DNA of 63,257 nt from Prasinococcaceae sp. CCMP 1430 (taxonomy: Eukaryota > Plantae > Prasinodermophyta): the NCBI GenBank assembly GCA_013416795.1, contig RQSC01001094.1, positions 1-63,257 on the forward strand, in the 5' to 3' direction. This document shows positions 1 to 28,078 of this stretch, piece by piece; position 1 is the stretch's first letter; the number at the start of each line of letters is the position of its first letter. Made by a program: the position numbers and the translations under genes. The notes below the pieces were generated by a model. It was not told where the DNA came from, searched no databases, and saw only the letters and a list, made by a program, of their open reading frames with translations.

Positions 1-2
1 AG

Positions 3-794: not shown

Positions 795-913
795 GCGCGT
801 GGGCTGTAATATCTGCGGGATGCATGCAGGCCTTGGGCTGCAATGGCCAGCACGCCACCCTTCGTGCGAGAGGGCTACAGAGACGTACTATACAACAGTC
901 GCGGAGCGGTGCT

Positions 914-1911: not shown

Positions 1912-2373
1912 AGGGCGGCGATGGCGGCGATGGAGGCGCGGCTCCGGGCGAGATTGGCGGCGGGGCGTCGTCGGAGGCGGACGAGAGGCCACCTCGGCGG
2001 CGCGCGCTGCGCCCGCGGCCGCAGGGCGCGATGGCGAGCACGTCGTACCGGTCGGTCGAGTATGTGCTGATGAGCGCTGACCGCAGCGCGAACCGCCACC
2101 TGCGACGGCTGCTGGGCAGCGGGGGGGGCGGTGACGAGGACCAGCGCGCGGCGGCGGTCACGCACGAGGCGCTCGAGCGTGCAGGTGGCGACGAGGCGTG
2201 GGCGAAGGAGTTCGTCAGGCTATCATCGGAGGTATGGACGGGACATGGAACAAACACGCACAGGTGGAATTCCGATTCCTGCTGCGGACCCGCCTCAAAT
2301 GCGATGCCGGCAAGGAGCCCCGCATCTCAAAGCGAAACGACTTGGAAAACGCCATCGAAAGGTGTACGTGTGT

Positions 2374-2946: not shown

Positions 2947-2983
2947 CGCGCAGTCCACCTCGCGATTGTCACAGTGTACAGTA

Positions 2984-3655: not shown

Positions 3656-3843
3656 CGCATACGCACGCTCCCGCGCGCGCTGTGGCGGCCGCCTCCCCCA
3701 CCCTCCCCTGACCCCCCGCTTCCCCCCCACCCCCACGTACGCACCCACCACCACCAGGAGCTGCGCGCGCGCGCTCGAGTGCAATGTAGTTCAAAATGCA
3801 AGGGCAGACGTCCACATTCATTTTGACCTCTTGCGTTTCGGCC

Positions 3844-5138: not shown

Positions 5139-5368
5139 CCTGTACTTTATACAGAAGCCAGCGCTTTGCAATCGTACTGTATAGTACCAAGCGTCGCTAC
5201 TGTAGCCTGTTTGACAATGTGAATGCCACAGAGTGGCTCTCTAGCTTGATACGAGATAGTCGCAAGCATTGCGGGGCATGCCACGCGCCTGGTTGCAGCG
5301 CGCGCGCTGTACATTTGCGCCGAGGCGTGGCCTTGCGCGCACGCGCGGCGTGAAGATTCGTTTCTACG

Positions 5369-6757
5369 CTACACGCTGCTGCTGGGTACGCCCGAGTCCT
5401 TGCCCTCGCCGCTTCCGGACTGCACACGCTCCGATGCGACCAGCGCACGGACGCGGTCGCTCGCCGAAGCTTCCAGCGCAGCCATGACGGCGTCAGCGTT
5501 GGCGATGGAGTCAAATGCCGAGTGGTGCGTGCGCTTGCCGATCCCTCCTCCAACCTCGACATTCATGTGACCCGACACGCCGGCGCCCTGCCCCGCCTTG
5601 GGCCAGCCCATCGTGATCACGCGGCGCACGAGCGTCGCGTCCGCGTCGACGCCCCATGACCGCATCCATGCCATCCACGCGTCGACGCTGTCATCGATTC
5701 GGGTCGAATCGTACTCGAATGCATCCAGGTCCTCAGTAGCGACTGTTTCGAAGTCGGTGAACCCAATACTGCGGAGGAAGTCGGCCTGAGAATCGCCGTG
5801 GTGCACCAGCTCGCGCGCCTGCGCCTCGGCCCAGGCGGGATCGATGTACACCTTGACGCCAGTTTTGCGCGCCATCCTGCGTTGCTTGCCGAAGTTGAAA
5901 CCCTCGTCGAGACAGTTATCGATCAATTTCCCGCTTGCGTCGACCATGTGCAGCGAGCTGTTGTGGACGATGCAGTCGCGAGCAAGGCACACGAGCCGCT
6001 CGAAGGGGTGCCTTCTCCACACATTGACCACCCGGGTGGTCTCCAGTGCTTCTGGGCTGAGGAACGTGTGGTGGAAAGCGTTGCGCGCGAGGTCGTAGTC
6101 CATGCGCTTGAACTTGGAGTAGTAGTGCTTGCCTTTCATCCGGTCTTGCGACACCCCATCCTTCAATTTCTTCTCGACAAGCGCCATCTCTGCCTTGGTG
6201 GCACGCCTGTCAATAGGGGGTTCTTCCCTGGCCTTCCAGTGCACCGCGTGCCGGTACACGTCCTTGATGCGCTCGGAGTAGCCGCCGTACGCAGCGATCC
6301 CGTGCGCCTTGAGGATGGCACGTGCCATGGATGCCGCCCACGAGGAGCCCGTGCAGTCCTCCATGAACAGCAAGAAATTGGCAAGCGCGAATTGCGGCGG
6401 CGGTGATGCCTTTGCTGACGCGCCCGCGACGGAGTCGTTCTTCGCTGCACCAGCCGCCTGGAGCGCCTGCGCCGCTTCACCTACGCCTGCGCTATCGCCG
6501 GCCACAGGACTGCTTTCCTCGGCCATCAACCGCGCCTCAACCTGACTCGTAAACACCGCCGCGTTGTGGGGTCCACCTGCGCTGCCGGTCGCGGCATCGG
6601 CGTTGCCAGCGCCGCTGCTCGCGGCGCCAAGGGCGCCCACACCGACGGCGGGCCTCGCGGCGGCCGCGGTCGCGGGAAAAAGCAGTAGCGGGGCCATCGC
6701 TACGATCGCGGCACGCCCGCACCCGCGCCATCGGAGGCAGCCCCTCGGCGTCGCCAT
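5369..6757 (-). CDS. Secreted/type II sulfotransferase-like protein (Stf0-like), copy A
   Basis: N-terminal hydrophobic signal (AAIVAMAPLLLFPATAAAA). Motifs in sulfotransferase order: FMEDCTGSSW (degenerate 5'-PSB), VVNVWRRHPFERLVC (3'-PB-like), VATEDL (YEDL-like), SIANADAVMAAL (Stf0-like C-terminal N..EV..AL). The coding region is reasonably confident; the family call is weaker. Confidence 0.5.
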   Translation of the reverse strand: MATPRGCLRWRGCGRAAIVAMAPLLLFPATAAAARPAVGVGALGAASSGAGNADAATGSAGGPHNAAVFTSQVEARLMAEESSPVAGDSAGVGEAAQALQAAGAAKNDSVAGASAKASPPPQFALANFLLFMEDCTGSSWAASMARAILKAHGIAAYGGYSERIKDVYRHAVHWKAREEPPIDRRATKAEMALVEKKLKDGVSQDRMKGKHYYSKFKRMDYDLARNAFHHTFLSPEALETTRVVNVWRRHPFERLVCLARDCIVHNSSLHMVDASGKLIDNCLDEGFNFGKQRRMARKTGVKVYIDPAWAEAQARELVHHGDSQADFLRSIGFTDFETVATEDLDAFEYDSTRIDDSVDAWMAWMRSWGVDADATLVRRVITMGWPKAGQGAGVSGHMNVEVGGGIGKRTHHSAFDSIANADAVMAALEASASDRVRALVASERVQSGSGEGKDSGVPSSSV

Positions 6758-7576
6758 CGTCGCCTCCGCGTGAGGGCGTTGATTTCTGTCTCCGTACGCG
6801 ATCCGCCAAGCAAACTTCCGCCACGACACCCAACACCCCTCGTTATGGCAAGGCACCCGGGCCAACGCCGCTAACCCCTCCCTGTCGTGCAAAGGAGCGC
6901 CCGGCGGGCAGCGGCACGGCGCGCTGCAGCCCGCGGCCGGTCGCGGCTCGGCGCCCCGCGCCGGCGCGGAGTCCCGCGGCGCGCGCTCAAAGTGGCGCCG
7001 CTCCCCCGAAATTTAAATCTTGACTCAAAGCGCGCAAGCCAAACAAACAGCGACGTCCTCGGAATCCGCGGCTGGCGATTAGCAGCCAGCGAGAGTTTTT
7101 CCGTTGAAACTTGANCCCGCGGCCCGCTGCGTGCGCGCCGGGGAGTAGCGCGGCGGGTGGCGCGCCCGCCAGCGCGCCCGCAGCTCTCGACGCCATCGTT
7201 TGGACGAAGGGCCAGAGCCGGGCGGCGCACTCAAGGAGGCACCCACCGCAGTGCGCGCGCGCGCGCGCCCGTGTGGCGCCCGCGTGTGCGCGCCGGCAAC
7301 CGCAACCGAATCTGCGCGGATAAGCGCCACCGCCCAATCAGAAGCACTGGCGGACGAACTCCCTGCAAGGCAGCATTCATTTTGATATGGGTCGAAGGTC
7401 GCACGTGCGTGCCTGTTTGACAATGTGGATGCCACAGAGTGGCTCTCTAGCTCTAGACACGAGACAGTCGCAAGCATTGCGGGGCATGCCACGCGCATGG
7501 TTGCAGCGCGCGCGCTGTACATTTGCGCCGAGGCGTGGCCTTGCGCGCCCGCACGGCGTGAAGATTCGTTTCTACG

Positions 7577-9032
7577 CTACACGCTGCTGCTGGGTACGCC
7601 CGAGTCCTTGCCCTCGCCGCTTCCGGACTGCACACGCTCCGATGCGACCAGCGCACGGACGCGGTCGCTCGCCGAAGCTTCCAGCGCAGCCATGACGGCG
7701 TCAGCGTTGGCGATGGAGTCAAATGGCGAGTGGCGCGTGCGCTTGCCGACGCCTCCTCCGATCGCGGCATTCATGTGACCCCACACGCCGGCGCCCTGCC
7801 CCGCCTTGGGCCAGCCCATCGTGATCACGCGGCGCACGAGCGTCGCGTCCGCGTCGACGCCCCATGACCGCATCCATGCCAACCACGCGTCGACGCTGTC
7901 ATCAATGTGGGCCGAATCGTACTCGAATGCATCCAGGTCCTCAGTAGCGACTGTTTCGAAGTCGGTGAACCCAATACTGCGGAGGAAGTCGGCCTGAGAA
8001 TCGCCGTGGTGCACCAGCTCGCGCGCCTGCGCCTCGGCCCAGGCGGGATCGATGTACACCTTGACGCCAGTTTTGCGCGCCATCCTGCGTTGCTTGCCGA
8101 AGTTGAAACCCTCGTCGAGACAGTTATCGATCAATTTCCCGCTTGCGTCGACCATGTGCAGCGAGCTGTTGTGGACGATGCAGTCGCGAGCAAGGCACAC
8201 GAGCCGCTCGAAGGGATGCCTTCTCCACACATTGACCACCCGGGTGGTCTCCAGTGCTTTCGGGCTGAGAAACGTGTGGTGGAAAGCGTTGCGCGCGAGG
8301 TCGTAGTCCATGCGCTTGAACTTGGAGTAGTAGTGCTTGCCTTGCATCCGGTCTTGGCTCACATCATCCTTCAATTTCTTCTCGACACGTGCTATCTGTG
8401 CCATGGTGGCATGCATGCTGGAACCTCTCTTCCAGTGCACCTCGTGCCGGTACACGTCCTTGATGCGCTCGGAGTAGCCGTCGTACGCAGCGATCCCGTG
8501 CGCCTTGAGGATGGCACGTGCCATGGATGCCGCCCAAGTCCTTGATGCGCTCGGAGTAGCCGTCGTACGCAGCGATCCCGTGCGCCTTGAGGATGGCATG
8601 TGCCATGGATGCCGCCCACGTGGAGCCCGAGCAGTCTTCCATGAACAGCAAGAAATTGGCAAGCACGAATTGCGGCGGCGGTGATGCCTTTGCTGACGCG
8701 CCCGCGACGGAGTCGTTCTTCGCTGCGCCCGCCTGGAGCGCCTGCGCCACCCCACCTACGCCTGCGCTATCGCCGGCCATAAGACTGCCTTTCTCGGCCA
8801 TCAACCGCGCCTCAACCTGACTCGTGAACACCGTCGCGTTGCGGGGTCCACCTGCGCTGCCGGTCGCCGCATGGGCGTCGCCAGCGCCGCTGGCCGCGGA
8901 GCCAAGGGCGCCCACACCGACGGCGGGCCTCGCGGCGGCCGCGGTCGCAGGGAAAAGCAGTAGCGGGACCATCGCTACGATCGCGGCACGCCCGCACCAG
9001 CGCCATCGGAGGCAGCCCCTCGGCGTCGCCAT
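7577..9032 (-). pseudogene. Stf0-like sulfotransferase-like protein, copy B, frameshifted by an 82-bp internal duplication
   Basis: Close paralog of 5369-6757, split into ORFs 8364..9032 and 7577..8755 by the tandem duplication at 8456-8619. Pseudogene or assembly error. Confidence 0.6.
8456..8619. repeat. 82-bp direct tandem duplication
   Basis: GTCCTTGATGCGCTCGGAGTAGCCG...GATGCCGCCCA starts at both 8456 and 8538. Copy A has only one unit. Confidence 0.95.
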
Positions 9033-9445
9033 CGTCGCCTCTGCGTGTGGGCGTTGACTTCTTTCTCCGTACGCGATTCGCCAAGCAAACTTCCGTCACG
9101 ACGACCAACACCCCTCTTTGTGGCAAGGCACCCGGGCCGACGCCGCTACCCCCACCCTGTCGCGCAAATGAGCGCCCGGCGGGCAGCGGCACGGCGAGCG
9201 GCAGCCCGCGCCCGGTCGCGGCTCGGCAGGCAGCGGGGGCGGCGGGCGCGGCGAGCATCGCGACGCGCCGCGGCGAATTTTCGCGCGCGCGGCGAATTTT
9301 CTCGCGCGCGGCGGATTTCGAATCGTTTGGGCGGCGCTGCCACACCGCGCACAAGGGACGGCGCAGCGCCGCCGCGCGGGCGCACAGACTCCGAACGTCC
9401 GCCCAATCCTCGCGCCCCCCATTTCCCCCCGCGCGCGCCTGTCCC

Positions 9446-11233: not shown

Positions 11234-12173
11234 CTAGCTGGCCCCACTTCCGCGCGCGCTTGCACTATATAATGATTAAATGAATGCAGTTTGGCGCACC
11301 AGCGCAGATTCGCTTGCTTCCCCCCATCCCACCCCCCGCGCGCGTTGCAGCGCGTGCTGAGAGAGAGAGCCAGAGTACACCTTTGTGACAGGCATGCAAC
11401 CGAGCGGGGCGAGCAAGGTCGATCGTATAGAGTGGGTCCAACGGTCACATGCGTGCGTAACGGGAGTGCGCGATCCTTATCAAAGGGCGGTGGTCACTTT
11501 AAATGACGGTGCGCCGCTGCCGCTGCTGTGCTGAGAATCATCATGAGACCCTCTGACTGACACGGCAGATGCTGCGAGTCCGCCGGTCTCTCGTGCCGCC
11601 AGCCGCGGCACAGCGCGCGCGGCGTGCCCGCCTATCCTGCGGCGGCGGCGGCGTGGGAGTGCCGGGTGCGGCGCTCGCTCGCCGTCCGGCGGTTCCTGCG
11701 CCCGTGCGGCGCGCGCACCTCGCGGCCGCGGGGAGGGCGCGCGAGATTGACGCGCGGACGCGCGCGCGCCGGCGCTCGGCGTGGGCGCCGGCATGTGTGC
11801 GCCAGTCCCTTAGCTGCTCGATGGCAAAAAAAGCTCGCGAGAGCCACACGCGCGCTTGGGGGCGGGAGGGCGGATGGGGGCAGTCAGCGCGTCAATGCAG
11901 GCAGCGGCTGCCATCGCCACGAATCACGGCTGCGAGCGCTGTGAGTTGGCGGTATCGGATGCCGCTTCGCGGCATCATCGCGCGGGTCAACCCGTCAACG
12001 TTGGCAGAGGCTGCCAAGTGCTCCCTCGCGGGCTACTGGCGCAGCTCGCCGGTAGCAGCCACTCGTCTCGCGGCGCGCGCGCGCTGTGCGAGCTCCCCCC
12101 CCCTCCCCCCCCTTCCCCTTCCCTTCCCCCTGTCCTTCCCCCGTCCCGCCGGCGTGCTGCTCTCCGCTGAGCT

Positions 12174-13574
12174 GTGCGCATGTGCGTGGTGGGCGGTGCG
12201 CTTCGGCGCCCGCCCGCGCCCTCCTTCGGTGACGCCGCAGAGGACGACGCCCTCACCGTAAGCTGCGAATGGGAGTCGCGGCCCATAGGGCTGTCGCCCA
12301 AGGGGCGGTCGTCCAGAAGGCTGTCGCCCATAGGGCTGTCGCCCCAGTCGTCGCTCGAGTGGCCGCGCTCGCCTGTCGACAGCGCCGCTGCCGACTCGGC
12401 GTCGTCAGAAGAGGGCGAGCAGCAGCATGAGCAGCCGCAGCAGCACGAGCAAGAGGACCAGGGGCAAGGGGAGGCGCACCGTCCGCAGCAGGAGCAGCGA
12501 CCGAGCGGGTCGATGGCAGACGCACGCGGGCGGCGAGGGGCGAGGGGCGCCGACGACGGGGGAGGCGGAGGGGGCAGCGATGAGGAGGGCCGTAAGCGCC
12601 GGCGGCTGCCTCGCGGCGGCTGCGCCGCTGAGGGTGCGGACGAACCCGGCGACGATGCGGCCGCGCTGGCACAATTGGGAGGGCCTGATGTGAGTGCTGG
12701 CGGCGGCGAGACCAGCAACACCGACGACAGCGCCGCCATGCAAGAGCGCCTTTCACTAGTGCACCGCATGGACGCATCCATCGCTGCGCGCATGCTTGCT
12801 TCGGGGGATCTCGCAGGGAAGGTCAACAGCGGATCGCAGACCACCCCTGCCAATGGCACTACCACTACCAGCGGCTGCGGTGGTGATCTCCGCGGCGGCA
12901 CTGTCGGGCGTGGGGCGAGCAGCAGTAGCGACGACGGTGCGGGACGCAGCGGCGCGCGGCACAGGCGCGGAGGGGGGGGTGCAAGAGGAGGGAAAGCCAA
13001 CGATGCCCCTGATCGTTCGACAGGAAACGACTCTGCGCGAGCGGGCTCCAACGGCAGTGGTGGCGCGACGAAGCGCCAGCGCTGCCTCCAAGACCCGAGC
13101 GACGCCATAGCAGTCCCTACACCGCCGGCACACACGTGCTCGCCCTATGTGCACTACTCGGGCGCGTCGCTTGCTCGCACCCCCGCGACTACCGCCATCA
13201 TCGCCGGCAGCGGCTACGACGCGTACGGAATGCCTCCGTCTTCGTCGACCACCAACTCGCAAGCGTTGCTGTCGTTGCTCGGTACAGATCCATTGCCCAT
13301 CAACGCGCCCGCGGCTGAGATTGCGCCAGCATCGCTGGCTGTGCTCGCGCCGTTTACGCAGGCAATGCGGAAGTTGCCGCTCAGAGACCGACTCTCGACT
13401 ACTCTCCAGCACGTTTTGCCTGCTTCTCTTCCGGCGTCTGCGCCGCCGCTGTCCGTGCTCGCACAGTGGGACGCGCCCGTTCACGCGCTCAACCAAAGTA
13501 CTGCGGCAGCTGCAGCTGCGCAGTCGCTCATCGCTGGCATGTTGGTCGAGAATGCCTCCGACTCTCCCGAGTGA
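12174..13574 (+). CDS. Hypothetical low-complexity protein, possibly nuclear
   Basis: 466-codon ORF, G/S/D/Q-rich, with basic clusters RKRRRL and KRQR, followed by an AT-richer 3' region. Start uncertain; no domain recognised. Confidence 0.45.
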   Translation: MRMCVVGGALRRPPAPSFGDAAEDDALTVSCEWESRPIGLSPKGRSSRRLSPIGLSPQSSLEWPRSPVDSAAADSASSEEGEQQHEQPQQHEQEDQGQGEAHRPQQEQRPSGSMADARGRRGARGADDGGGGGGSDEEGRKRRRLPRGGCAAEGADEPGDDAAALAQLGGPDVSAGGGETSNTDDSAAMQERLSLVHRMDASIAARMLASGDLAGKVNSGSQTTPANGTTTTSGCGGDLRGGTVGRGASSSSDDGAGRSGARHRRGGGGARGGKANDAPDRSTGNDSARAGSNGSGGATKRQRCLQDPSDAIAVPTPPAHTCSPYVHYSGASLARTPATTAIIAGSGYDAYGMPPSSSTTNSQALLSLLGTDPLPINAPAAEIAPASLAVLAPFTQAMRKLPLRDRLSTTLQHVLPASLPASAPPLSVLAQWDAPVHALNQSTAAAAAAQSLIAGMLVENASDSPE

Positions 13575-13593
13575 GGTCGGACCGAGCGAACAG

Positions 13594-13614
13594 ACACACA
13601 CACACACACACACA
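13594..13614. repeat. (CA)n microsatellite
   Basis: ACACAC... run. Confidence 0.9.
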
Positions 13615-13968
13615 TCAAATAGGTCTACACTCATATACTTCGAAGTATACGCTACACATACTCCAACCCTGCTATATATATGCAACAAGCAGCGCCCAAC
13701 CACCGTCCAGGGCACGCCACCACCGATCACGCACCATCGATGTTTCCACCCGTTCTTACCACCGAAGACTACTTGGCAACCACATGTGCCACTTCCCATG
13801 CTTCAGTACCACCTCGACCGTGCACATTTTCTCGCGCTTCAGAAGGCAGCAGCTTTGTACAAAAACTCACGAATTACAAACAGGCGACGGTGTCGCGCGC
13901 AGGACGGGGGCGGTAGATGAATCGCCGGGGTTGCGCCTGCGAGCCCACAGTGGGTGGCGACGGGCGCA

Positions 13969-16401
13969 CTACCCGCCGAAACAACCGCACATAGGCTGCT
14001 TCTTCGGTGTAGGTGCCGGCGCGGGTTCCAATGGTTTCGGCGGCGGGGGCGGAGGCGGCGCGATCGCGGCCTCGTACGTCTCCCACAGCCCCACCTGCGC
14101 CCACGGCCCGCCGAAAGCCGTCATAGCAGCCTGCGACGAGACCCGTCCTGCGAATTGCGCCTTCGAGACCACGCCCGATGTATAGAGAGCCTTCATGGCC
14201 GCGCGGTCGCTGGGCAGCCCACACTTGTCCAGGAATTTGGCGAGCGCGCGCAGCTTGAGCATCTCAGACGCGCTAGGCGACCGACCTGCGTTCGGCGCCC
14301 TCTCCGCAGTCGCCTTGGGCGCCGTGCCTGCGCCGCCATCGGGGCGAACGTCAGCAGCAACGCGGCCGACGTCGGCCCCATCCAATCGCACGGCCTCCTC
14401 GGAGGCCCCCTCCTCCTCCTTCCCTGCCTCTTCCTCCGCCTCGACAACGGCCTCGGCAGCGTCGAGCGCCTTGCGCGCGTAGGGCCGCCAGAGCTCGCAC
14501 GCCGATACGTCCATGCCGAACGAGTGCAGCACGCCGCGCAGCAGCAGCACGAAACGCATGACCATCCACATCTGGCTGTCGAAGCCGATCTCCACGCTCT
14601 GGCCCAGCCCGCCCTGCGCGAAGGGCGAGGCGAGCGCGTCGTCCACCGCGCGCGTGTCGAACAGGATGTACGCCACGGTCACCGCCTTGTCCATGCCACC
14701 CGCGTCGCCGCCCATGCGCTGCTCCGCACCCTCCTTGAGGGTCACGTCCAGGCCCGCCGAAGCCATCGCATCCCGAATGGTAGCCTCGTCCCCTTCAGCG
14801 AGCATCTCAACCATGTTCGCGAACACTACGCGAATCTCGGGCGTGAGCACCTTGGTCTGACCGAAGTCTAGCAGCGCGAGCCGGCCGTCGCGCATCATCA
14901 TGAGATTGCCGGGGTGCGGATCAGCGTGGAAGACGCCGTCGACGAACATCGCATGGCCGTACGAGCGCAGCAGCTCGATGAGCGCCTCGGGCACCGCCTC
15001 GATCATGGCGCGCTCCTTGTCGCCGAGCGGCTCGCCGCCCGGCGCACTTTCGGCCTCCTTCGCGCGCAGCAGCGCTGAAAGGGGCTCGCCGTACACGCGC
15101 TCCATCACGAGGAGGCGCTCCGACGACACCGCATCCACGCACGCAGGCACGTAGATGGTCTTGTCGAAGCCCGCCGCGGACAGCGTGGCTTTGACGTGCT
15201 TCTGCATCTCGCGCTCGCGGTCGAAGTCGAACTCCAGCGGAATCTGCTTGAGGCTCTCTTCGGCGATGGGCATGATGTCCAGAGGCAGGTAGGGGCTAAT
15301 GAAACGCGCGACGCGCCGCAAGTTGAGCAAGTCTGCGCCGATGAGCGCCTCGAGTCCGCGGTGCTGCACCTTGATTACCACGTCCGTCGTAGGCGCGCCG
15401 GCGGCCTCGGCCACATCGGCGCGCAGCGTGGCGGCATGCACCTGCCCGATGGAGGCCGCCGCCAACGCCTCCTCGTCCACGCTCTCAAACACGTCGGCAG
15501 GCCCGACGGACTCCGCGCCGTCGCGGCCAAGCGGTGACATGAGCAGCTGCTCAGCGATCGAGAGCTCGACGTCGGTCCACGGGCGCGGCGGGTGCATGTC
15601 AAAGAGCACGTTGAGGCGCTCAATCCACTGCCGCGGCATGAATTCCCCCTTGGAAGCCATCACCTGCGCGGACTTCACATAGAAGCCACTCATCGCGAGG
15701 ACGAGCTCATACACCTTCTCGCCGCCCCACTCGTGCGTCTGGTCCCAGCGCGCGTGCCTCTTTTCTGCGGGCAGGCCACGCACCGCGCGTTGCACGCGGA
15801 TGTATCGCAGGAAGATGGGCATCATGCGCCGCCAGAACCCCAGCGCGCGGCGGTCGCCTGGCGAGAAGTGCGCGAGCATCCCCTCGAGCGCGAAGACGGC
15901 CGCCGCAGGCACGCTCAGCCACTTCATGCGCGCGTCTACCTCGGCGAGCGCGCGCTCGATGGGTGGCCCCGCGCCGCCGTCGTTGTATCCGGGCGTCCCG
16001 CCGCCGCCGCCGCCTCCGAGCATCTCGCAGATGCTCTTGCGGCAGGGCGGTGACGCCGCCATCGCCAGGATTGCCACCCCGCGCCACACGCGCGCAGGCA
16101 GCAGCGCCGACGCGCCAAAAAGCGCGCCCGAGCGCGCCGCGACGGATGCGCCGCGTCGCGCGAGCCGCGCGCCGAGCCGCATCGCGCCAGCAGCGGCGCT
16201 CGCGCGCCCGCGCGCCCCCGTGCCCCCCGCATCAGCAGCCTCGGCCGCATCCATGCCCTCCACCGCCGCCGCAGCTGCTACCTTCGCCAACCCCTCCATT
16301 GCGCACCCCACCGCTGCTGGGCGGCGGCAGAGTGGCATCCGTTCGCAGCGCTTCGGCCTGCCGCGCTGTCCTGCTGCTGCGGCTCGCGCGGCGGCGCCCA
16401 T
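13969..16401 (-). CDS. ABC1/UbiB (ABC1K) atypical protein kinase
   Basis: GFYVKSAQVMASK..F, ALAAASIGQVHAATL, VVIKVQH, EFDFDRE, LLVMERVYG, DGVFHADPHPGNLM, LALLDFGQTK. ATG at 16401 or 16290. Confidence 0.92.
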   Translation of the reverse strand: MGAAARAAAAGQRGRPKRCERMPLCRRPAAVGCAMEGLAKVAAAAAVEGMDAAEAADAGGTGARGRASAAAGAMRLGARLARRGASVAARSGALFGASALLPARVWRGVAILAMAASPPCRKSICEMLGGGGGGGTPGYNDGGAGPPIERALAEVDARMKWLSVPAAAVFALEGMLAHFSPGDRRALGFWRRMMPIFLRYIRVQRAVRGLPAEKRHARWDQTHEWGGEKVYELVLAMSGFYVKSAQVMASKGEFMPRQWIERLNVLFDMHPPRPWTDVELSIAEQLLMSPLGRDGAESVGPADVFESVDEEALAAASIGQVHAATLRADVAEAAGAPTTDVVIKVQHRGLEALIGADLLNLRRVARFISPYLPLDIMPIAEESLKQIPLEFDFDREREMQKHVKATLSAAGFDKTIYVPACVDAVSSERLLVMERVYGEPLSALLRAKEAESAPGGEPLGDKERAMIEAVPEALIELLRSYGHAMFVDGVFHADPHPGNLMMMRDGRLALLDFGQTKVLTPEIRVVFANMVEMLAEGDEATIRDAMASAGLDVTLKEGAEQRMGGDAGGMDKAVTVAYILFDTRAVDDALASPFAQGGLGQSVEIGFDSQMWMVMRFVLLLRGVLHSFGMDVSACELWRPYARKALDAAEAVVEAEEEAGKEEEGASEEAVRLDGADVGRVAADVRPDGGAGTAPKATAERAPNAGRSPSASEMLKLRALAKFLDKCGLPSDRAAMKALYTSGVVSKAQFAGRVSSQAAMTAFGGPWAQVGLWETYEAAIAPPPPPPPKPLEPAPAPTPKKQPMCGCFGG

Positions 16402-16439
16402 CCGCAGGCGCGGCTGCGCGGCAGTCGCGGCGGCGGCGA

Positions 16440-17178
16440 GCAACTACCAGCTCGACTTCGGTGGAGGAGTCGATGGTGGCGGTGGGCGCATCGTGTTTGT
16501 CGCAAGCGCACAAGCCAAGCACGACCTGGCGCCCTTGAAAGACCATTTCAACGACACAAACACACCATCCATCAGGGACATGCTTCAGGGATGGCATTCC
16601 GGGCATCGCGGGTCGCCTCATGCGTCGAAGAAACAGATCAAAAAATGCCGCAAAGCCGGCTTGCGAGCATGGTCGCGGGAGTGCATTGCACTCACCGGCG
16701 TGGACGACGCGCTCGCCGCCGCCGTCGCCGCCGGTGGTCTCTCGGGCATCACCACCGCCTCGCCTGGGTCTTTGCAGCCGGCAGAGCCTGCGGAGAAGGT
16801 CGTCCTGGTGCATACGCAGCGCGATCCGATAGCGACGGCCGTGTCAGGCATGATGTACTTCAACAAGAAACTTGCCCTGAATGCTGACGGGAAGATCGTG
16901 CGGTCTGACACCAACGAGCCACCCGATGCCGACGATGTGGTTGAGGCTTGCACGGAGAGCGCAGTACACATGGTGCTCTTCCATTGGGTCGCCACGCAAG
17001 CCCTGCCATCGCTGGGCTATGATGTGCGAACGTTCGAGTACGCCGACGAGCGCGGCACAACACGCGCATGGCTACGACAGCTTAGCGACGCGCTGGGACT
17101 GACCAGTATGCCCGAGTCAGCCATCGAGAGGGTCTGCGAGGAGATCGATCCAGACCGCATGCGCGCCTTGCAGAACGA
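16440..17178 (+). CDS. Sulfotransferase paralog fragment (copy 1; middle of gene only)
   Basis: Intact 3'-PB motif VVLVHTQRDPIATAVSGMMY. Homology to 18666 onward begins abruptly 39 bp from the ABC1 ATG and ends in the N gap. Confidence 0.7.
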
Positions 17179-17369
17179 NNNNNNNNNNNNNNNNNNNNNN
17201 NNNNNNNNNNNNNNNNNNNNNNNNNNNNNNNNNNNNNNNNNNNNNNNNNNNNNNNNNNNNNNNNNNNNNNNNNNNNNNNNNNNNNNNNNNNNNNNNNNNN
17301 NNNNNNNNNNNNNNNNNNNNNNNNNNNNNNNNNNNNNNNNNNNNNNNNNNNNNNNNNNNNNNNNNNNNN
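17179..17369. other. Assembly gap (191 N)
   Basis: Run of N. Confidence 1.
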
Positions 17370-18046
17370 CCCCCACCGCCGGCGGCAGGAGGGGCCGAAG
17401 CCGCAGCGGGCGGCCGATCGGCGGCCGCCGCTGCGGGCCCTAGAGCGAGCGAGGCGTCCCGCCCGGTGCGCTCGCTCGCTCTCGCGCGCGCCCGCGCATA
17501 TCCGCTCGCCGCGGATTCGGGGAACGGCGAACACTCGACGCTTCGCATCGCATTTCGGACGCGGCTTCCGCGCGTCGCGACGGGCCGACGCACATGTCCC
17601 GCCATCCGTCCCGAAAACGCGCGGCGACGCGTTCGCGCGCGCGAACCCCACGTTGCGCGCGAAACCCAATCCATATTTAAGGTATTTGATTTGGCACAAC
17701 GCCGTCGTGATGGTAAAAGAGCGTCTGCTGAGATTCCGCTCTCGAGAGATTGGATGCATAATAGGGTTCAAATTTTGGGACGCGCGAGCGAAGTTCGCGA
17801 CGATCCCGATGCCCCGCTCGCGCCGCGCGGTGCGGCTGTTGGAGATTTGAATTTTCGATTTTGGATCGTTGAAGGCGGTGCTTGTAAACCGACCGTCCAA
17901 ACGCGTACCGTACGACGCCCCCCACCCCGAGCTGCTGGGGAAGGGGGGGGGCACTGCGGGCGCCAGCGGGCGGGGCGCGGGGCGTGGAGGTGCCACTGCG
18001 CGCGTGGGGCCGTGGGTAGCGCCCCTCCTCATTCGGTCTGGGCGCG

Positions 18047-19705
18047 ATGGCGGCCGGCCGCGGCCGAGCGACGCGGACGGGTGGGCCCGCTGCGGGGCTG
18101 ATAGCGCTGCTCGCGCTGCTCACAGCGACGAAAGCCGCGGGGCGTGCGTCGGCGACTTTGGAGGGACGCACGGCGGCTGCTGTGGTTGATGGCGACATGC
18201 CCCCGCTGCGGCTCGCTCCGGAGCTCGCCCGTGCGCTCGCACAACCTGAGGGAGGTCAAGGTGAGACAGGAAGGACGCACTCGTGCGCGCCGCGTGCGCG
18301 TCTGGGCGTTAGCGCGCGTGGGGCGTTCACTGCGCCCCACGTCCGTGCGCGCGCGCACGCCACGGTGCCTTCGTGTTCTGAGTTGGACGGGCGAGTTCAC
18401 CAGTCAGCTTGCTCTAGCTCTGACTCGCTCCGTCGCCCGCACTGTGACTGCACGCGCGCAAATCCGTTTACCGCTGCACCTGCACCCATGCCTCGCCACA
18501 ACGCACACGCATGCGCAGGCGGGCGCAGAGATCGCGCCGTGCGCACGGTGATTCTGACGGACAGTAAGCCCAAGACCGGCACGACTGTTTTGGAATGGGC
18601 CGCCGCCGCGCTCTTGCGAGAGGCTGCCAAAATCCTGGAGAATGCAACCTTCAGCGATGAGTCCCGCAACTACCAGCTCGACTTCGGTGGAGGAGTCGAT
18701 GGTGGCGGTGGGCGCATCGTGTTTGTCGCAAGCGCACAAGCCAAGCAGCTGGACCGCGGGAACTTTCTGGTAAAGTTGCTGTGTTTGTGTGGTAGGTAGT
18801 CCAAAATGCTTACGGGGCATCATTCGTCGCGTCATTCGTCGAAGAACAATATCAATAAGTGCCCCAAAGCCGGCTTGCGAGCATGGTCGCCGGAGTGCAT
18901 TGCACTCACCGGCGTAGACGACGCGCTCGCCGCCGCCGACGCCGCCGGTGGTCTCCGGGGCATCACCACCGCCTCGCCTGGGTCTTTGCAGCCGGCAGAG
19001 TCTGCGGAGAAGGTCGTCCTGGTGCATACGCAGCGTCTAGGCTATCGCTGCCGGCACAGTCCGTACTACATGAAGTTGTTCTTTGAACGGGTGAATGCTG
19101 ACGGGAAGATCGTGCGGTCTGACACCAACGAGCCACCCGATGCCGACGATGTGGTTGAGGCTTGCACGGAGAGCGCAGTACACATGGTGCTCTTCCATTG
19201 GGTCGCCACGCAAGCCCTGCCATCGCTGGGCTATGATGTGCGAACGTTCGAGTACGCCGACGAGCGCGGCACAACACGCGCATGGCTACGACAGCTTAGC
19301 GACGCGCTGGGACTGACCAGTATGCCCGAGTCAGCCATCGAGAGGGTCTGCGAGGAGATCGATCCAGACCGCATGCGCGCCTTGCAGAACGAGATCAACT
19401 CAGGCCACAAGCGTTCGGGCGGTCAGCACTACGCCGGCTTGGGCGGGAGCGGAGGGTCGGCCAACAAGCGCAAGGTTGCCACGGCGAGCGCGCGCGCCTA
19501 CGAGACGCAACTCTCGCCCGACGTGGTCGCACGCTGCAAGGCCGCGGCGGCATTCCACCTGCCGCGTGACCTCGCCGAGTTGTACTACGGGGAGGAGGAC
19601 GAAGAAGCGCCGCTGCCTCGAGCGACTACCTCGGGCTCTACTTTCTTATCGACCCTCGGTCGGAGTCAACAATGCGCTAGGTTCGGCCTAGGATATATCC
19701 GTTAG
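18047..19705 (+). CDS. Secretory-pathway sulfotransferase (P-loop, PKTGTT), copy 2; apparent stop at 18797 and scrambled 3'-PB motif arise from complemented blocks
   Basis: Signal peptide GLIALLALLTATKAAG, 5'-PSB VILTDSKPKTGTTVLEW (about 18569), FEYADE, ERVCEEI, and a C-terminal LSPDVVARC...AFHLP. ORFs 18047..18799 and 18806..19705 are in the same frame. Possible intron from GTGAGA 18261. Confidence 0.75.
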
Positions 19706-19919
19706 ACTATATACAGTACAGTACGTTTTTCCGTTCCAGAATGATCATTTGTTTGTACGAAAGAACTGCTCTTTTTGGCGCCAAATTGTATCAGTCTATG
19801 GTTACCGTTTCCGTTTCTAAGGATGACCGTCCGGGGATTTCGGGCCAAAAAGGATGACCTTCCTGGGAAAATCGCGTGTGAGTCCTCAACGTCGATAAAG
19901 ATGCTCCATTGTCGCGGTC

Positions 19920-20638
19920 GTGCGGCTGTTGGAGATTTGAATTTTCCGCCACGAACATTTGGCTGGCAGGTTTGCGCATGGCATGCTGCGGGGGGTGGGG
20001 CTCGCGCTGGGGAAGGGGGGGGGCACTGCGGGCGCCAGCGGGCGGGGCGCGGGGCGTGGAGGTGCCACTGCGCGCGTGGGGCCGTGGGTAGCGCCCCTCC
20101 TCATTCGGTCCNCGTGCGGTCTGACACCAACGAGCCACCCGATGCCGACGATGTGGTTGAGGCTTGCACGGAGAGCGCAGTACACATGGTGCTCTTCCAT
20201 TGGGTCGCCACGCAAGCCCTGCCATCGCTGGGCTATGATGTGCGAACGTTCGAGTACGCCGACGAGCGCGGCACAACACGCGCATGGCTACGACAGCTTA
20301 GCGACGCGCTGGGACTGACCAGTATGCCCGAGTCAGCCATCGAGAGGGTCTGCGAGGAGATCGATCCAGACCGCATGCGCGCCTTGCAGAACGATATCAA
20401 CTCAGGCCACGAGAGTTCGGGCGGTCAGCACTACGCCGGCTTGGGCGGCGGACCGGGCGGAGAGTCGAACAACAACATGCGCAAGGTTGCCACGGCGAGC
20501 GCGCGCGCCTACGAGACGCAACTCTCGCCCGACGTGGTCGCACGCTGCAAGGCCGCGGCGGCATTCCACCTGCCGCGTGACCTCGCCGAGTTGTACTACG
20601 GGGAGGAGGAGCTTCTTCGCGGCGACGGAGCTCGCTGA
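19920..20638 (+). CDS. Sulfotransferase paralog, copy 3 (5' flank plus 3' half; middle missing at N 20112)
   Basis: 19920-20110 matches 17830-18037; 20113-20638 matches 19111 onward; ends EELLRGDGAR*. Confidence 0.7.
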
Positions 20639-20969
20639 TGGAGCCCGAGATGAAAGAATAGCTGGGACCACGATGAGATGGCTTTCAGTCGGAATCAACA
20701 GTGCGCTAGGTCCGGCCCAGAATATATCCGTTATGCTCGTACACACTTTCTGTCTCATTCTCCCTCTCGTTTAGACTAGGACTAGACTAGTACTGTTGTC
20801 ACAAGTGACTATTTGAATGGATGAACTGCTGTTTTTGGCGCCAAAATCGATGCTTGATGAGTAGTCTAGTCTAGACTAGTACTAGTCAATCACATGATTG
20901 TACTGTACCAAGTTTTGTATCAGTCTATGGTTTCCGTTTCGTTTCTGGCTGAGGCGAGGAAGGGCCGCC

Positions 20970-23045
20970 ATGCGGGGCGTCGGGCTGCGGCGCGCCACAG
21001 CGGGTGCGCTGGGGTGGGGCGGGCGCGAGCGGCCCGCACAGCGCACCGCGGAGGGAGGGGGCACGGGACATCGCGTAGCTCCGTCCCGCGGGATGGGCAC
21101 GGCTGCCCGGAGTGGCGCGGGGCGCTGCGATGGCGGCGTTGGCCCGCGCACCCGCGCGGTGCCCTCCGCGGTTTTCGTCCGCTTTCGTGCCCTCGTCCTC
21201 GTCGTCAATGCGGCGCTCGCGCTCCTGAGCCTGGTCCCGCCGGCTGAAGGTGTTGGCGGCACGCGGCGTTCGGATCCGAGCCTGCGGGAGCTCGAGGGGC
21301 GCCTCGAAGGAAAGGTGTCTGACCACGCGGTGCGTCGTGCCGAGGCCGTTCCGGGTGGTTCGAGACGCCGGCAGCGAGGAGAGCGAAACGATGGCGTGGC
21401 CGCCAGCGACTGGTGGCCCGAGGAGGGCGACTGCTCGGCGATGCTTGCCGGTCTCGCCTCGGTCCACGTTCGAAGCAACTACCTGTCTGCGAGCGGCGAA
21501 GAGGGCGGCGATGCGAAGAATGTTGTGCAAGAAGGGTTCATGCCTGTGTCGTTCGAGCCTCGGCACTTCGTGTGTGATGCGCACCGCGCGAGGGGTGCGC
21601 TGCTGTCGGCCGAAGCGCACGACTGGCCTAGTGCTGCGCGCGACAAGGCCACCGGTGCCGCGGTAGTGCGCGCCGCCGACAGTGCCAGCGTGTTCAGCGG
21701 CGCGAAGAGCGGCGGCGGCAGTGCCAGTACTGGGGACGAGGCCGAGCGGGCGCTCATATATTGGATGCATGAGCGCAAGGCGGGCGGTGACCTCGTCAAG
21801 GGGTGCATGAACGTGCCGACGAAAGGTCATAACTTTGGTTTTTACGGCAAGGATGAGGAGATACCATTCGGGCGGCAAGAGTACTGTAACCGGTCGCAAT
21901 CACTGCTCGCGAACACCTCCGCGTTGACGGTCGTGACCGAGTACTTTGCGCCGCCGGTGATGTGCATGCACGACGAGGCGGTGATGCGACACACGAGCTT
22001 CGTGGCCGTCGTACGCCACCCACTCTTCCGCTGGCAGAGCGAGCTTTCATGGAGTTCGGCAATCGCAAAGCTCGATGGCGTTTGGCAGCTTTTTGCGGAG
22101 GAGCCTCCCCCGCTTGGCGGATGCGAGCCGGGCCGCCCTTGCACCGGGTCTGGTGGCATACGAGAATACCTGCAGCCCGGCAAGCTCAGCCCGAGGTCAC
22201 GCGAGCGCATCAGCGACGCGCAGCTCGAGGCGGCCATGCGTTCCCTGCGCTCCTGGATGGATAACACCTGGGATGGAGGAAAACGTTGCAGGGATATGCG
22301 AGACAAAGACATGAAAGCAGCAGGCCCGCGAGACAAGGCTCTGTCGAGGGCTGGGCATATCACAGAAAGCTGCTACATTGACAATTATCTCGTGCGTCTT
22401 CTGTCACAGAATTGCTCCTGCGATGTTGGTTTGCTTCAGACGGCGAGGCGTGCATCCAGCGACACACTTTACCTCCACACTAACCGCGACGGGTGCGAAA
22501 TCAACTATCACCGCCGGGTGACGTACGAGGATTTCCTGCTGGCACGGCAAGCTGCGGCTTCATTCAACGCACTTGTTCCACTCGAGCGTCTCCAGTGCGA
22601 CGCGAAGCGGGTGTTCGCACTCCTGGGTGGCAACACCGGCGCGTCGATGCACCCTGACTTCTCGCTCCCGTCGGGCAGTCACGTCAGCACGCTGGAGATC
22701 CGCGTACTGGAGGTGCCGGAGCTTCGCGCGATGCTCGAGGCGGACAACATGTACGACCTGGTGAGTCTGCGCTAGCGGCGGGCGCTGCGGCGCCCACCCA
22801 TCCGATGACAACAGACTGACTGACTGAGTGCGCCGCACGCGCGCATCGAGTGCGCTGACACATCGCTGCTCATTCCCGACGCCAACGCGTCTCGCTGCTC
22901 CGCGCATGCGGCCCCCCGCACGCGCGCACAGATGCTCTACGAGTGGATTTCCCAGGAGCTCTATCCGAGCTACTTCTGCGAGCCGCCCCTCGTGTCGCCG
23001 GCGCTCGATCCCAACGCCCGAAATGCGCTCGGGCGCTCGCGCTGA
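20970..23045 (+). CDS. Type II membrane sulfotransferase (Sulfotransfer_2-like), 2 exons
   Basis: Anchor FVRFRALVLVVNAALALLSLV, IYWMHERKAGG (5'-PSB), FVAVVRHPLFRWQSE (3'-PB). Intron 22761-22931 (GTGAGT...CAG) restores the C-terminal N.YDL.LYEW motif. Confidence 0.75.
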
Positions 23046-23599
23046 TGGCGCCGCGAGGATCTGCGCGTACCCCACCACACGGCTTTTCAAGTACAGTAGT
23101 GCTAGTACGAAGTACAGTAACCAGCGACTCTGCGCTGATGCGCAAAAGTGCATTCATTCTGCTTATGTCTACGGCCGAAATCGAAATCGAATTGGAATTG
23201 CAACGCAATGTGGCGCCAACACCCGCGCGCGAGCGAAGGTCAATATGCATTTGAATTCGAGTAGGCGCGACGGCGCCGACGGCCACACCGCGCGCGCATG
23301 GCGGCGGCGGCGGCCACCGCAGCGTACAGCGCCCTCGCTGCCACGCACGCAGGGTTCGTGGCCCGGGCGGCGGCGCGCGTGTGGTCGGGTAGGGGAACTT
23401 TTTTTTTGCGCGGCAGCAGCGATCGGCTAGTCGGCGTGCAGGGAGAGGCACGCAGACATCGGTCGCTCGAGCTTGGGTCGCGCTGGGCACCGCCCGAGCC
23501 GCGTGCGCGGCAGTAGCTCGCGGTATGCGGGCGTTGGAGGCTCATGCGGACGGCCCGCGCCTCGCGCGATGCGCGCGATGCGGCTTCTCTCGCCTCGCA

Positions 23600-25000
23600 A
23601 TGTACGGCGCTGCGCTCGTGCTACTCGCATTGACGACAGGCACGCTCTTGGCGTCGCAGAGGCAGGTGGGTAAGAACAGAGATGCCCGCGCGGGCATCGA
23701 AAGCAGAAGTTCGCACCGCCTCCTATTGGGAATGGGAGGGCCTGAGATCTCATCGCGCAGAGACAGTCGTGGCGGCTGGACCACCGACTCCGTCCTGCCC
23801 CACGCGCGTAGCGAAGGGGACATTCTGGCCTTCGTCGCAGTATTCACTGGCTTTGGCGAAAGCTCCGCTGCTCGACGAGCCAACTTGCGCGCGACGTGGT
23901 TCCCGGCCTCGCGTGACGCGCTGGCCAAATTTGAAGAGAGACACAGCATCGCCATGCGATTCGCTGTAGGGGATGCCGATGCGAGCGCACCAGTAGGTAA
24001 CATCACAGCGCAGGAAGCCGAAGCAGCGCTGCAAGCAGAGGTCGACATCTATGGAGGCTTCATGCGCATGCACGGCGTTACGGAGCGCTACAGCAATTTG
24101 CCTCACAAAACGCGCACCTTCTTCGCGTCTGCAGCGCGCCACCCGCTGCTGTCGCGGGCGCAGTGGCTGGTGAAGATTGATGACGACGTGTACGGTGCGT
24201 CGGGCAGGACAATGCGCCGGTCGCCAGCGCGTGGCTGCCAGTGGCGTTGAGCTCGCCACGCCGTGCACTTGCCAGAATGTCCGGATCTATCCATCTCGCA
24301 ATCGGATTTGTGATCATCTCTGACTGTCCTGCTCACAGTCATACCTCGCAACCTAAACGCAGTGTTGCGCCGGCACACTCCTGCGTCGGGTGCAGAGCAG
24401 CGCATTTACCTCGGGGTCGTTAAAGCGGGTGATATTTACCGCCCCGGCCATGAGGGCTGGGGGAGCAAGGTGCGCTCGCTTAGCAACGCCTTTCAGAGCG
24501 GTGGCCAGCCCCGTCGTCGTGCCCGATCTGAGCGGCGCCTGCAAGCAGCTGACGCGCATGCGCCATGCCCTGCGCGTCAAGTGGGTGGAGCCAAGCTGGG
24601 GGCTGCTCGCGTCGCAATACTATCCGAACTGCTTCGGTACCGCCTACGCCGTGTCACAAGCAGCTGCTGCTCAGTTGGGATCGTTTGCCGGCTCGGCGCT
24701 TCGGTATCTCGCGAATGAAGATACGATGATGGTGCGCACGCGCACGCCCGCATGCGCACGCGCTCGTGCGTGCGCGTTCTAACACGCACGCACGCGCGCA
24801 CGCACGCGCGCGTTCACACCCAGGGACTGTGGAGCATTGCGTTCGGCTGGGACATGGTGAACGAGCCGGACCTGGGTAGGGCGCGGTGCGGCGAGGGCGC
24901 AGCGGTGGTGTACGAAGTATGGGAATGCGCGGGGCTCTGCCACCCGGAGAAAGATATGTCCGCTCTACATGCCAATTCCTCGTGCAACTTGGACTCGTGA
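23600..25000 (+). CDS. GT31 beta-1,3-galactosyltransferase (AGP/hydroxyproline GalT-like), about 4 exons
   Basis: Anchor MYGAALVLLALTTGTLL, VAVFTGF...RRANLRATWFP, RFAVG, ERYSNLPHKTRTFF, WLVKIDDDVY (DxD), IYLGVVKAG, W.EP...YYPNCFGTAYAVS, LANEDTMM/GLW, and a Cys-containing tail CAGLCHPE. Introns start GTGCG. Confidence 0.9.
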
Positions 25001-25861
25001 ACATAGCCACGCACTCTTACCATCGCACCCCTCGACTATCGTTTGTGACCACCGCCACCGCCCTCATACCATTGAACTCATCTCTCGACTATCGTTTCCT
25101 CTCAGTATACACGGGGCGCATCCCCGCGCGCGTCCGGTCTCCCTCTCCCATAGCTACTGTAGCTATGCTGCTCAAAATGTAACACCCCGCGGAAAATTTT
25201 GGGTGCGAAAATCAAATTTGAGGCGAACAGGCGGCTCGACGCTGTACCCGTCTCCCCCTGTGCGGGGGAAGGGGGGGGGTACTGGGTCGACCGTTATCGC
25301 AATTGGACGTGGAGAAGTCGATCGTGAGCCGCGGCGCTGCGGCTCTGCCTCCTCCCCGCCCTGCACGGCCTCTGCCGTGCCGAGCCGCTCGGCGCTCGCT
25401 GCGCGCCGAGTGGCGCTCTGCTGCCAACTCTCGCTCTCAATTATACAGTTTCGCCGGTGGGCAGCACTTGTGCAAGTGTAGGCTAGGGCGTGGCGCTGGC
25501 CGGGGTGTGCCGCGGGGGCCTTTTCTGGCAATGTAGAGACATGGTTACGAGTCCTTCGCGGCCGCGCGACCAGTCGCGCGTGGCCTCGCTTCAGGGCCCC
25601 CTCCGTAGTAGCCACGTCGGCAATCCTGTACAGTAGGACTTTTTAGTAGTCTCGGACTATGCATCGAGATGATGGCCGTTCGCTCGGTGTGCGAGGCTCA
25701 GGATGCGAGCCTGCGAGTGCGTGCGGCCAGCTGGCAGGTCCACAGCGCGCGCACCCGGCGGCGCCTCCCCGCCCGGCCCGCCCCCCCGCGCGCCGCCACC
25801 CCTGTCCATGCGTCGAAGGCGCCGCGCTGGGTAAAGAGCGGCGTTGGTTGGCGTTGAGTGG

Positions 25862-27094
25862 ATGGGTCCTGCGGCGAGGGCGCGCCCGCGTCAGCGCCGC
25901 GGTTTGCGGGGGCGGCGGCGGGGCGAGGGGAGAGCGGCGGCAGCGGCGGTGGCGGCGGCCCTCATGCTGGCCTGTGACGCCGCCGTCGTGAGAGCTCACT
26001 TGAGCGACGCGGCGCTCCTGGCCCTGGCGGCACGCTACGACGAGACGCGCGCTCTGGCGCTGCGTGCGGCGGCCGAGGGCGGCGCCTCAGGGCGCGGCGT
26101 CGGGTGGCTGCACATACCTAAGTGCGGGACCGCTTTCGGCGTGGCGCTGTACCACTACGCGTGCCGGCGGTAGGGACGCTTACGGTGGTGGGAGGGTACG
26201 CCGTCGTTTAACGGGTTGCGTACGAAACCAAACTGCAGGATCCAATCTGAGACGGTGCCGTACGCGAACGGCGAGGGCAGGCGCCCTCTTCGCCAGGGAT
26301 ATCCGGTCGGCAGAATACATAGCGACCTCGTGGACGGCTATCCAATGGCCAGGTGGTGCCCGCGCGCGCGCTTTGCCAATGTCAAAGGGGATCACACACC
26401 GTACATTTTGCTGCGCAGAAAGGCCAGGCACGAAGGCAACGCAGGCGTGGCCTGGGCCACCATGCTGCGTCGGCCCAAGCAGCGCCTCTTGAGCGCCTAC
26501 GGCGCGGGGTTGCACGCCATGAGGATGTCCAAGGACTACGCATTCGCTATGTACGCGCTCGTGGAGACGCCGCTCATGTTTGCGCGCGTGGGGGGCGTGG
26601 CGGGTTGCCAGACGAAATCCTTACTGGACAAGCACTGCGGGCAGAGAGGCGAGCGCAGGGACGGGCTGCGGCGTGGGGATGTCGCCAGGGCGAAGCGCGT
26701 GCTCGCCGAACAGTTCACGTATTTTGGGATTACGGACAGGTGCGCAATCCAAGAGTGGGCGCAGATAGACACGCGTTGTGTGCAAGCGTCGCGCTGCCGA
26801 GGCCCTGACCGCCGCCGCCGGCGCGCCCGCAGGTGGCAAGAATCTATTGCGCTGTGGCATGCCGTGGTCGGGACACCTGCTCCGCCCGAGCAGCTCGCCG
26901 TCGAGCTCATGGACAGCAGGCACACGCCCTCGAACGGCTTCGACGCGCGCGAGCAAGTGGACGTTGGATCGCAGGCGAGGCGCTACGACGAGTCGGCGCT
27001 TGACGGCTTCGAGGACGAGGCGGACGAGGAGGTCTACAGGTTCGCGGAGTTCGAGAAGCTCCGCTCCGAGCGCGCGAAGTTGCAGTGCCAGTGA
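25862..27094 (+). CDS. Type II membrane sulfotransferase (Sulfotransfer_2/Gal3ST-like), about 3 exons
   Basis: Anchor AAAAAVAAALMLAC, VGWLHIPKCGT (5'-PSB), ATMLRRPKQRLLSAY (3'-PB), FTYFGITDR/WQESIALWH, and D.ADEEVY..A. Confidence 0.8.
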
Positions 27095-27263
27095 CCCAGT
27101 GGTACACACACGTAGACTAGACTACTGTGCGGGTGTCGCGCCTGGAGGACCCACTCAAGCGTCCTTCCGCGCGGCGGCAAAGGCGGTGCACACGTCGCGC
27201 GCGGCGTGGCGCCCGACAGACAGCCCCGCTCGCGCTGACGGTGAGCCCCTTCCTTCCCTCCTC

Positions 27264-27298: not shown

Positions 27299-28078
27299 CT
27301 ACTTGTTTCAGATGCGAACTGTTGAGGGCATCCCTCGCGCGTTCGTTTTGACCTCGGGGCGTTCCCGTTCCCCCGCGCGCGTTTGAACGCGCCCGCCCGC
27401 GGCGACGCGCCGCAGCGGTGGCGGGGTCCGGTGTGTGTGGGGGGGGTGTCCGGCGTGAAGGGTGGAGGGGTGGCTGTGGGGTGGCGGAGGCGGCGTCCGC
27501 GCGCGCGAGCTGGCGGTGCCACTCCGCGCGCGTCCTGGGAGGGGTGTGTGGGGAGTGGGGGGGGAAGGGAAGGGACGGAGTGAGGGAGGGAGGGTGGGGG
27601 GGGAGGGAGGGCGGGAGAGCGCGTGCCACACACCGTCCCCTTCCGGCACCGCCGACCGACGCCCGACGCGTGACCTCGAAATGAATGCATTTTAAGTCTC
27701 CCGTGGCTAAATGTAATTCCATTAGAAATGACGTAGCCAGAGACCGAGCGCCGGTGCGTTCCCCCGCGGCAGCAGGGGACGGCGCGAGTCCCGCGCGGGC
27801 GAGGGGGTGGGGAGGGGAGGGCGGGGGTGAGGGGCGCCACACGCGCCGACGCCGCGAGATCTCTGCTGCGGTGTGACTGAGGTCATCGGCGCCGCGGCCG
27901 CGGCCGCGGCCGTGGCGACCGATGCGGCGCGGGATCTACAGGTTCGCGCTCAAGCTCTTCGAGGCGAGGCTCGCGCGCTTCAACGTCACGGTCACTGGGT
28001 CACATACATACACGTAATGATGATAGAGTGTACAGGCGCGTCGCGCACGATGGTGGCAGGCATGGCATGCCGAACCGC

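Follow-up and report, generated by a model that had tools for sequence, protein, structure and literature searches.

Within a tandem gene locus of Prasinococcaceae sp. CCMP 1430, short blocks of sequence read as the base-by-base complement of their paralogous counterparts, in the same direction and without the reversal that an inversion would give. The question is whether such blocks belong to the DNA of the organism and represent a new class of mutation, or whether they were written by the software that assembled the genome. We investigated this in the whole stretch of 63,257 nt in which the locus lies (referred to as the window), using comparisons of the window with itself, with contigs assembled from sequencing reads, with metagenome scaffolds, and with related proteins.

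Complement-only blocks in the window

The initial annotation had listed four blocks between 17872 and 19656. When these were compared base by base with their paralogous sequences in the same direction, 18748–18802 and 19037–19091 were found to be the pure complement of 16522–16576 and 16823–16877, respectively (55/55 bases each), and 17872–17932 was the pure complement of 19944–20004 (61/61 bases), with no direct match in any of the three pairs. The fourth pair, 19600–19656 and 20611–20667, was likewise purely complementary (57/57 bases, 0 direct matches), but the artefact comprises only 19600–19654 (55 nt), because a read contig placed on 19655–19973 begins to match the window at 19655. Bases 19655–19656 are thus real, and they are complementary to 20666–20667 by chance alone.

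All four blocks are therefore present in the deposited sequence, but the count of four was too low, as the window holds at least six. When the window was compared with its own complement, left un-reversed, a fifth pair of 55 nt emerged (27047–27101 and 27949–28003); the longest of the remaining complement-only matches were 16–22 nt, and these were mostly of low complexity. The sixth, hidden block, 26166–26220, was exposed by matching the window against the complement of the metagenome scaffolds L001–L008. Block length was exactly 55 nt in five of the six cases, when the fourth block is counted as 55 nt on the read-contig evidence. By our own estimate, the chance expectation of a 55-nt match within 63 kb is about 1e-24. 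Six is a minimum, and it applies chiefly to the 18 kb that L001 and L002 cover. The blocks (A1–A6) and the corresponding correct sequences are as follows.

A3, 17872–17932, unstranded: 61 nt, complement-only, with the true sequence at 19944–20004.
A1, 18748–18802, unstranded: 55 nt, the last common 55-mer before the copies diverge (18803 versus 16577).
A2, 19037–19091, unstranded: 55 nt, the first common 55-mer after the last copy difference (19036).
A4, 19600–19654, unstranded: 55 nt, the last common 55-mer before the fork between 19655 onward and 20666 onward.
A6, 26166–26220, unstranded: 55 nt, lacking a paralog elsewhere in the window; the exact complement of positions 12649–12703 of L002.
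A5, 27047–27101, unstranded: 55 nt, the last common 55-mer before the path of the window diverges (27102 versus 28004).
Correct A1 sequence, 16522–16576, forward strand: open reading frame (ORF) open, covered by DNA and RNA contigs, 52/55 to L001.
Correct A2 sequence, 16823–16877, forward strand: ORF open, covered by read contigs, 54/55 to L001.
Correct A3 sequence, 19944–20004, forward strand: covered by read contigs; the complement of A3 matches L002–L008 at 61/61.
Correct A4 sequence, 20611–20665, forward strand: contains the stop codon of the gene; supported by read contigs and relatives.
Correct A5 sequence, 27949–28003, forward strand: 55/55 to L001.

It had also been claimed that each of the four original blocks lies at the edge of a shared stretch and borders a copy-specific difference. 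This was confirmed, with direct homology on the other side of every block. This homology was exact over the 82 nt that precede 18748 and the 132 nt that precede 19600, and likewise over 301 nt beyond 19091 and 105 nt beyond 17933.

Read contigs, metagenome scaffolds, and related proteins

To identify the wrong member of each pair, Logan contigs of three DNA runs (X1, X2, and X10) and one RNA run (X17) were placed on 16300–20800. Sampled words of this stretch were present at 80–83 % in the DNA runs and at 33 % in the RNA run. The read evidence consists of these contigs, which possibly come from isolates other than the one assembled. Differences exist between X1/X2 and X10 (in the segment Ue, described below) and between these runs and the window.

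Read support for the un-complemented sequence had been named beforehand as the observation that would speak against a biological origin, and it was found: the contigs join the un-complemented blocks to copy-specific flanks. For A1, a 931-nt contig runs through 17934/18040–18665 and then through 16440–16576, and the un-complemented block therefore comes after the 82 common bases in real DNA. A 215-nt contig carries 16547–16576 immediately before 18803–18987, so that the un-complemented A1 block stands ahead of copy-2-specific sequence. Both joints (18665 to 16440–16576, and 16547–16576 to 18803–18987) occur in X1, X2, and X10, and RNA contig record 12 also supports the un-complemented A1. For A3, a 6.8-kb contig passes from 17370–17871 into 19944–19973, and the 931-nt contig of X1 opens with 19944–20005 before it continues at 17934 (onward to 18665); the true sequence at 17872–17932 is therefore the un-complemented one. 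For A2, a contig of X10 differs from the window at 16822 by a T, the base that copy 2 has at 19036, and is also placed on 19092–19467. We read this as the un-complemented A2 block lying between the variant and 19092–19467, and an RNA contig spans 16823–16896. For A4, a contig on 20113–20665 agrees with the window and contains no other letter, and the contig on 19655–19973, which matches the window from 19655, carries 30 further letters.

The un-complemented versions of three blocks were traversed by RNA contigs. Arithmetic on depth bins and contig pieces gave a depth of zero over 18748–18802 and 19037–19091; in X1, the depth of 19.2 in the bin 18716–18866 corresponds to exactly 64 positions of a 45.2-deep contig that starts at 18803. 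In all four original pairs, the member inside 17872–19656 is the wrong one. The read contigs covered 16300–20800, and A5 and A6 were assigned from metagenome scaffolds and from the restoration of ORFs.

The un-complemented version alone was carried by eight independent metagenome scaffolds (Tara or Logan). L001 was co-linear with the window at 96–98 % identity and matched the un-complemented A1, A2, and A5 at 52/55, 54/55, and 55/55 positions, respectively, and the un-complemented A3 at 49/61 (ungapped, across an indel). For the un-complemented A4 pair, the ungapped match was only 33/57, yet the complement of L001 is identical to 19600–19632. The complemented versions matched L001 at chance level (32 matches or fewer). 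When the window was matched against the complement of L001–L008, the artefact blocks alone gave matches, and these were always co-linear. At A5, L001 continues from 27046 into the version found at 27949–28003, and the complement of L001 4927–4981 equals 27047–27101. L002–L008 carry the un-complemented 61 nt of A3 directly after their match to 17370–17768, and the flanks of A6 match L002 directly across 40 nt on either side with one mismatch. The complemented versions were found in none of the other data, comprising read contigs, metagenome scaffolds, and relatives. Exact 40-mers of A2, complemented or un-complemented, were absent from JGI metagenome contigs, a result that is uninformative.

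Three further observations concern the scaffolds. In L003–L005 (at about 2223–2399), the 57-nt sequence of 20611–20667 is present twice, 120 nt apart, as a short tandem duplication that some wild strains have at the 3′ end of the gene. Three stretches of the window are missing from L001 (20795–23096, 25108–26690, and 27047–27948); L002–L008 contain 20113–25449, and thus at least the absence of 20795–23096 is a wild-strain difference. A direct repeat of about 69 nt flanks the 902-nt stretch that follows A5, and this stretch may represent a loop that was mis-assembled.

A protein search with copy 1 (16440–17178) returned one cluster of relatives, 91 % identical, encoded on scaffolds of Tara Oceans metagenomes and one Logan assembly. 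At the A1 site, all 12 relatives examined carry H[YD]L[VA]PLKD.F.DTNTPSIR, which are the un-complemented residues, and the same holds for DPIATAVSGMMYFNKK at the A2 site (12/12). At the A4 site, the C-terminus of the relatives is EELLRGDGAR, as encoded at 20611–20640. In copy 1, a single ORF remains open through 16522–16576 and 16823–16877. Copy 2 encodes nonsense residues and a stop at 18748–18802 and 19037–19091, and its ORF is broken; A1 introduces a stop codon into the tandem gene. Reading the blocks as their complement lengthened the ORF from 18047 from 250 to 526 aa, which is the length of three cluster members, and the restored ORF showed 366 identities to relative P0001 across 379/379 residues.

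Tandem gene, 18047–19629, forward strand: copy I, a 526-aa unspliced ORF after complementing of the blocks.

No Pfam family was matched in a search with the tandem gene, and the gene-position collection held no record of the broken copy-2 ORF. The tandem gene contains a canonical GT-AG intron at 18261–18518 (258 nt, in frame), which is visible in an RNA contig. On the metagenome scaffolds, gene calls of the prokaryote style read through this intron or begin within it. Outside the tandem locus, A6 splits a sulfotransferase-like ORF (25844–27094, with an HIPKCG motif), and reading A6 as its complement extended the ORF from 25844 from 109 to 423 aa.

Structure of the tandem locus

The three apparent paralogs of the locus proved to be two tandem copies plus one misplaced contig. 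In the graph of read contigs, Ua (17370–17871) leads to Ub (17934–18747 with the flanking blocks), and Ub leads through one of two unique paths, c (16577–16743) or d (18803–18957), to Ue, which consists of 16744–17178 followed by 20395–20665. From Ue, the graph exits either through Uf (19655–19943), which returns to Ub, or into Ug (20666 onward). In each of the three DNA runs, the depth of Ub and Ue was 1.7–1.9 times that of Ua, c, d, and Uf, a ratio characteristic of a two-copy tandem repeat with a unit of about 2.1 kb. Direct-repeat offsets in the locus were 2072–2226. The parts of the locus are as follows.

Mis-scaffolded insert, 16439–17369, unstranded: contig 16440–17178 followed by 191 N.
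Tandem copy I, 17872–19943, forward strand: a complete unit of roughly 2.07 kb following path d, with four artefact blocks.
Tandem copy II, 19944–20667, forward strand: incomplete, consisting of 19944–20110, a single N, and 20113–20667.

The contig 16440–17178, which follows path c, is the missing middle of copy II and belongs at the N at 20112. A joint between 16896 and 20113 was found, and an RNA contig connects 18665 with 16440–16659. The real join at the site of the insert leads from 16438 to 17370 via 56 nt in X1, X2, and X10. The same order is seen in L002, where positions 1–5057 correspond to 11389–16438 and are followed by 56 nt and then by 5114–5511, which correspond to 17370–17768.

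Single N characters are present in the window at 3921, 7115, 20112, and 52579; the N at 20112 does not stand for an ambiguous base but for a scaffolding junction within the repeat. A second tandem pair in the window (5258–6921 and 7466–9196, with an offset of 2208–2278) shows long exact direct matches and no complement-only blocks.

Origin of the blocks

The positions of the blocks were examined in relation to the contig graph. Five of the six are the first or last common 55-mer beside a copy difference; A6 has no visible difference adjoining it when compared with L002. Positions 16576 and 20665 are unitig ends and 19944 is a unitig start, and A1 and A2 bracket one bubble path at k = 55 (18803–19036). 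A3 is bounded by copy differences at 17871 and 17933, the latter being a position at which a T in the window stands against a C in every other sequence. The 61 nt of A3 would thus represent the union of two 55-mers offset by 6 (17872–17926 and 17878–17932).

The initial annotation had suggested an error of scaffolding or gap-filling software acting on k-mer-sized overlaps, and the read contigs, the scaffolds, the relatives, and the 55-nt size all support this suggestion. We consider it nearly certain that the blocks are errors of assembly software at k = 55 joins, in which overlaps were complemented and not reversed, and that they are not DNA of the organism. They would have arisen in an assembly based on a de Bruijn graph of k = 55, or on overlaps of 55 nt, when a subsequent step (repeat resolution, scaffolding, or gap closing) linked one graph contig to the next and wrote the 55-nt overlap complemented but un-reversed. 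This could happen by two routes. In one, a routine that meets a reverse-oriented node would print its junction k-mer in forward order but with the bases complemented. In the other, overlaps held in lower case would be skipped by a case-sensitive complement function when a contig is flipped; they would then be reversed only, which amounts to the complement of the correct sequence. The window sequence is all upper case and hence uninformative on the lower-case route. The same pipeline would also have mis-scaffolded the two-copy tandem repeat.

Several points speak against this explanation. The read contigs may come from isolates other than the one assembled; the junction at 19944–20004, in the same contig, was written correctly, and not all joins are therefore affected; the 61 nt of A3 require the reading as two overlapping 55-mers; and A6 has no visible copy difference beside it. 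The blocks resemble de Bruijn graph seams in that their length is 55, a common value of k, in that branch vertices of the graph are the sites of five of the six, and in that they are clustered in a repeat that was mis-ordered by the scaffolder, with N junctions nearby. Known errors at such seams are duplicated or missing overlaps, collapsed repeats, and chimeric joins. A pure complement without reversal differs from all of these, and a literature search for such a complement-only assembly artefact gave no description and nothing else of relevance. Complement-only 55-mers might be the mark left by a bug in some assembler, scaffolder, or gap closer in wide use, but we regard this as rather doubtful.

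The blocks could also have been added after assembly, by the handling of database files or by deliberate planting. The positions of five of the six blocks coincide exactly with branch points of the real read graph, and the blocks co-occur with scaffolding errors and N junctions; random or post-hoc edits would be expected to miss such positions. An origin of this kind is thus very unlikely.

An error in the decoding of colour-space (SOLiD-type) data is still less probable. Complementing a sequence leaves the 2-base colour code unchanged, and two miscalls placed 55 positions apart would transform the bases between them, a complement-only block being one of the three possible outcomes. The blocks resemble colour-space translation errors in that a run of bases stands under a fixed substitution with normal sequence on either side, but they differ in that one of the three transforms was seen and in that the length is fixed at 55. 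All blocks exchange A with T and C with G, and none shows the exchange A↔C/G↔T or A↔G/C↔T; if the three outcomes were equally likely, the same transform in six of six blocks would be expected in about 0.1 % of cases. When all 24 base permutations were tried, forward matches of at least 24 nt arose only under identity and full complement. Moreover, random miscalls are not expected to give a fixed length of 55 at graph junctions. We rejected this explanation, since of the three non-identity transforms only the full complement occurs.

The least probable of these explanations is that the blocks are real DNA of the assembled isolate, produced by parallel-orientation copying of a strand through an unknown process, and we give it practically no credence. 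To our knowledge, strand polarity forbids a parallel-complement product for the known polymerases and recombinases. Six independent events of exactly 55 nt would be needed at graph junctions, the blocks are absent from all other strains, transcripts, and wild relatives examined, and they destroy two ORFs that are expressed or conserved. The biological reading as a new mutation class was rejected, as independent data carry the un-complemented sequence. Ordinary inversion, which the blocks recall as short internal segments with mishandled orientation between co-linear flanks, was rejected since the blocks are base-by-base complements in the same direction and not reverse complements; no reverse-complement match of at least 25 nt was found within the window.

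With the blocks taken as assembly-software errors, no new mutation class is needed in biology. Each patch turns about 18 codons into nonsense, often with added stop codons, and two ORFs are split here, the 526-aa ORF of the tandem gene and the 423-aa sulfotransferase-like ORF. Homology-based annotation, tests for selection, and comparisons of paralogs are misled in this genome, and patches with no paralog in view, such as 26166–26220, are invisible from the sequence alone. The signature is simple and searchable, being a complement-only stretch of 55 nt between directly matching flanks, and the assembly could therefore be screened and corrected against its own reads. The finding is of value only as a warning about the quality of this assembly and perhaps about the software behind it. 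If widely used software were at fault, gene models would be silently corrupted in many public assemblies, and a scan of public genomes for complement-only self-matches or read matches would expose this class of error.

Two sequence-only scans of the window for further hidden patches did not succeed. A scan for ORFs that merge when a segment is read as its complement returned far too many stop-free frames in this GC-rich sequence; its best candidates, at 62205 and 32016, were rejected, as they did not appear to be coding. A scan of codon log-likelihoods, in which the sequence was compared with its complement, recovered A1 and A2 with a signal of about 0.3 nat per codon, but the 64 candidates obtained, against 23 in a mirror control, made it too noisy to use. 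Elsewhere in the window, which has a GC content of 66 %, 45875–45925 is a run of 51 T, which could be real or another oddity of the assembly.
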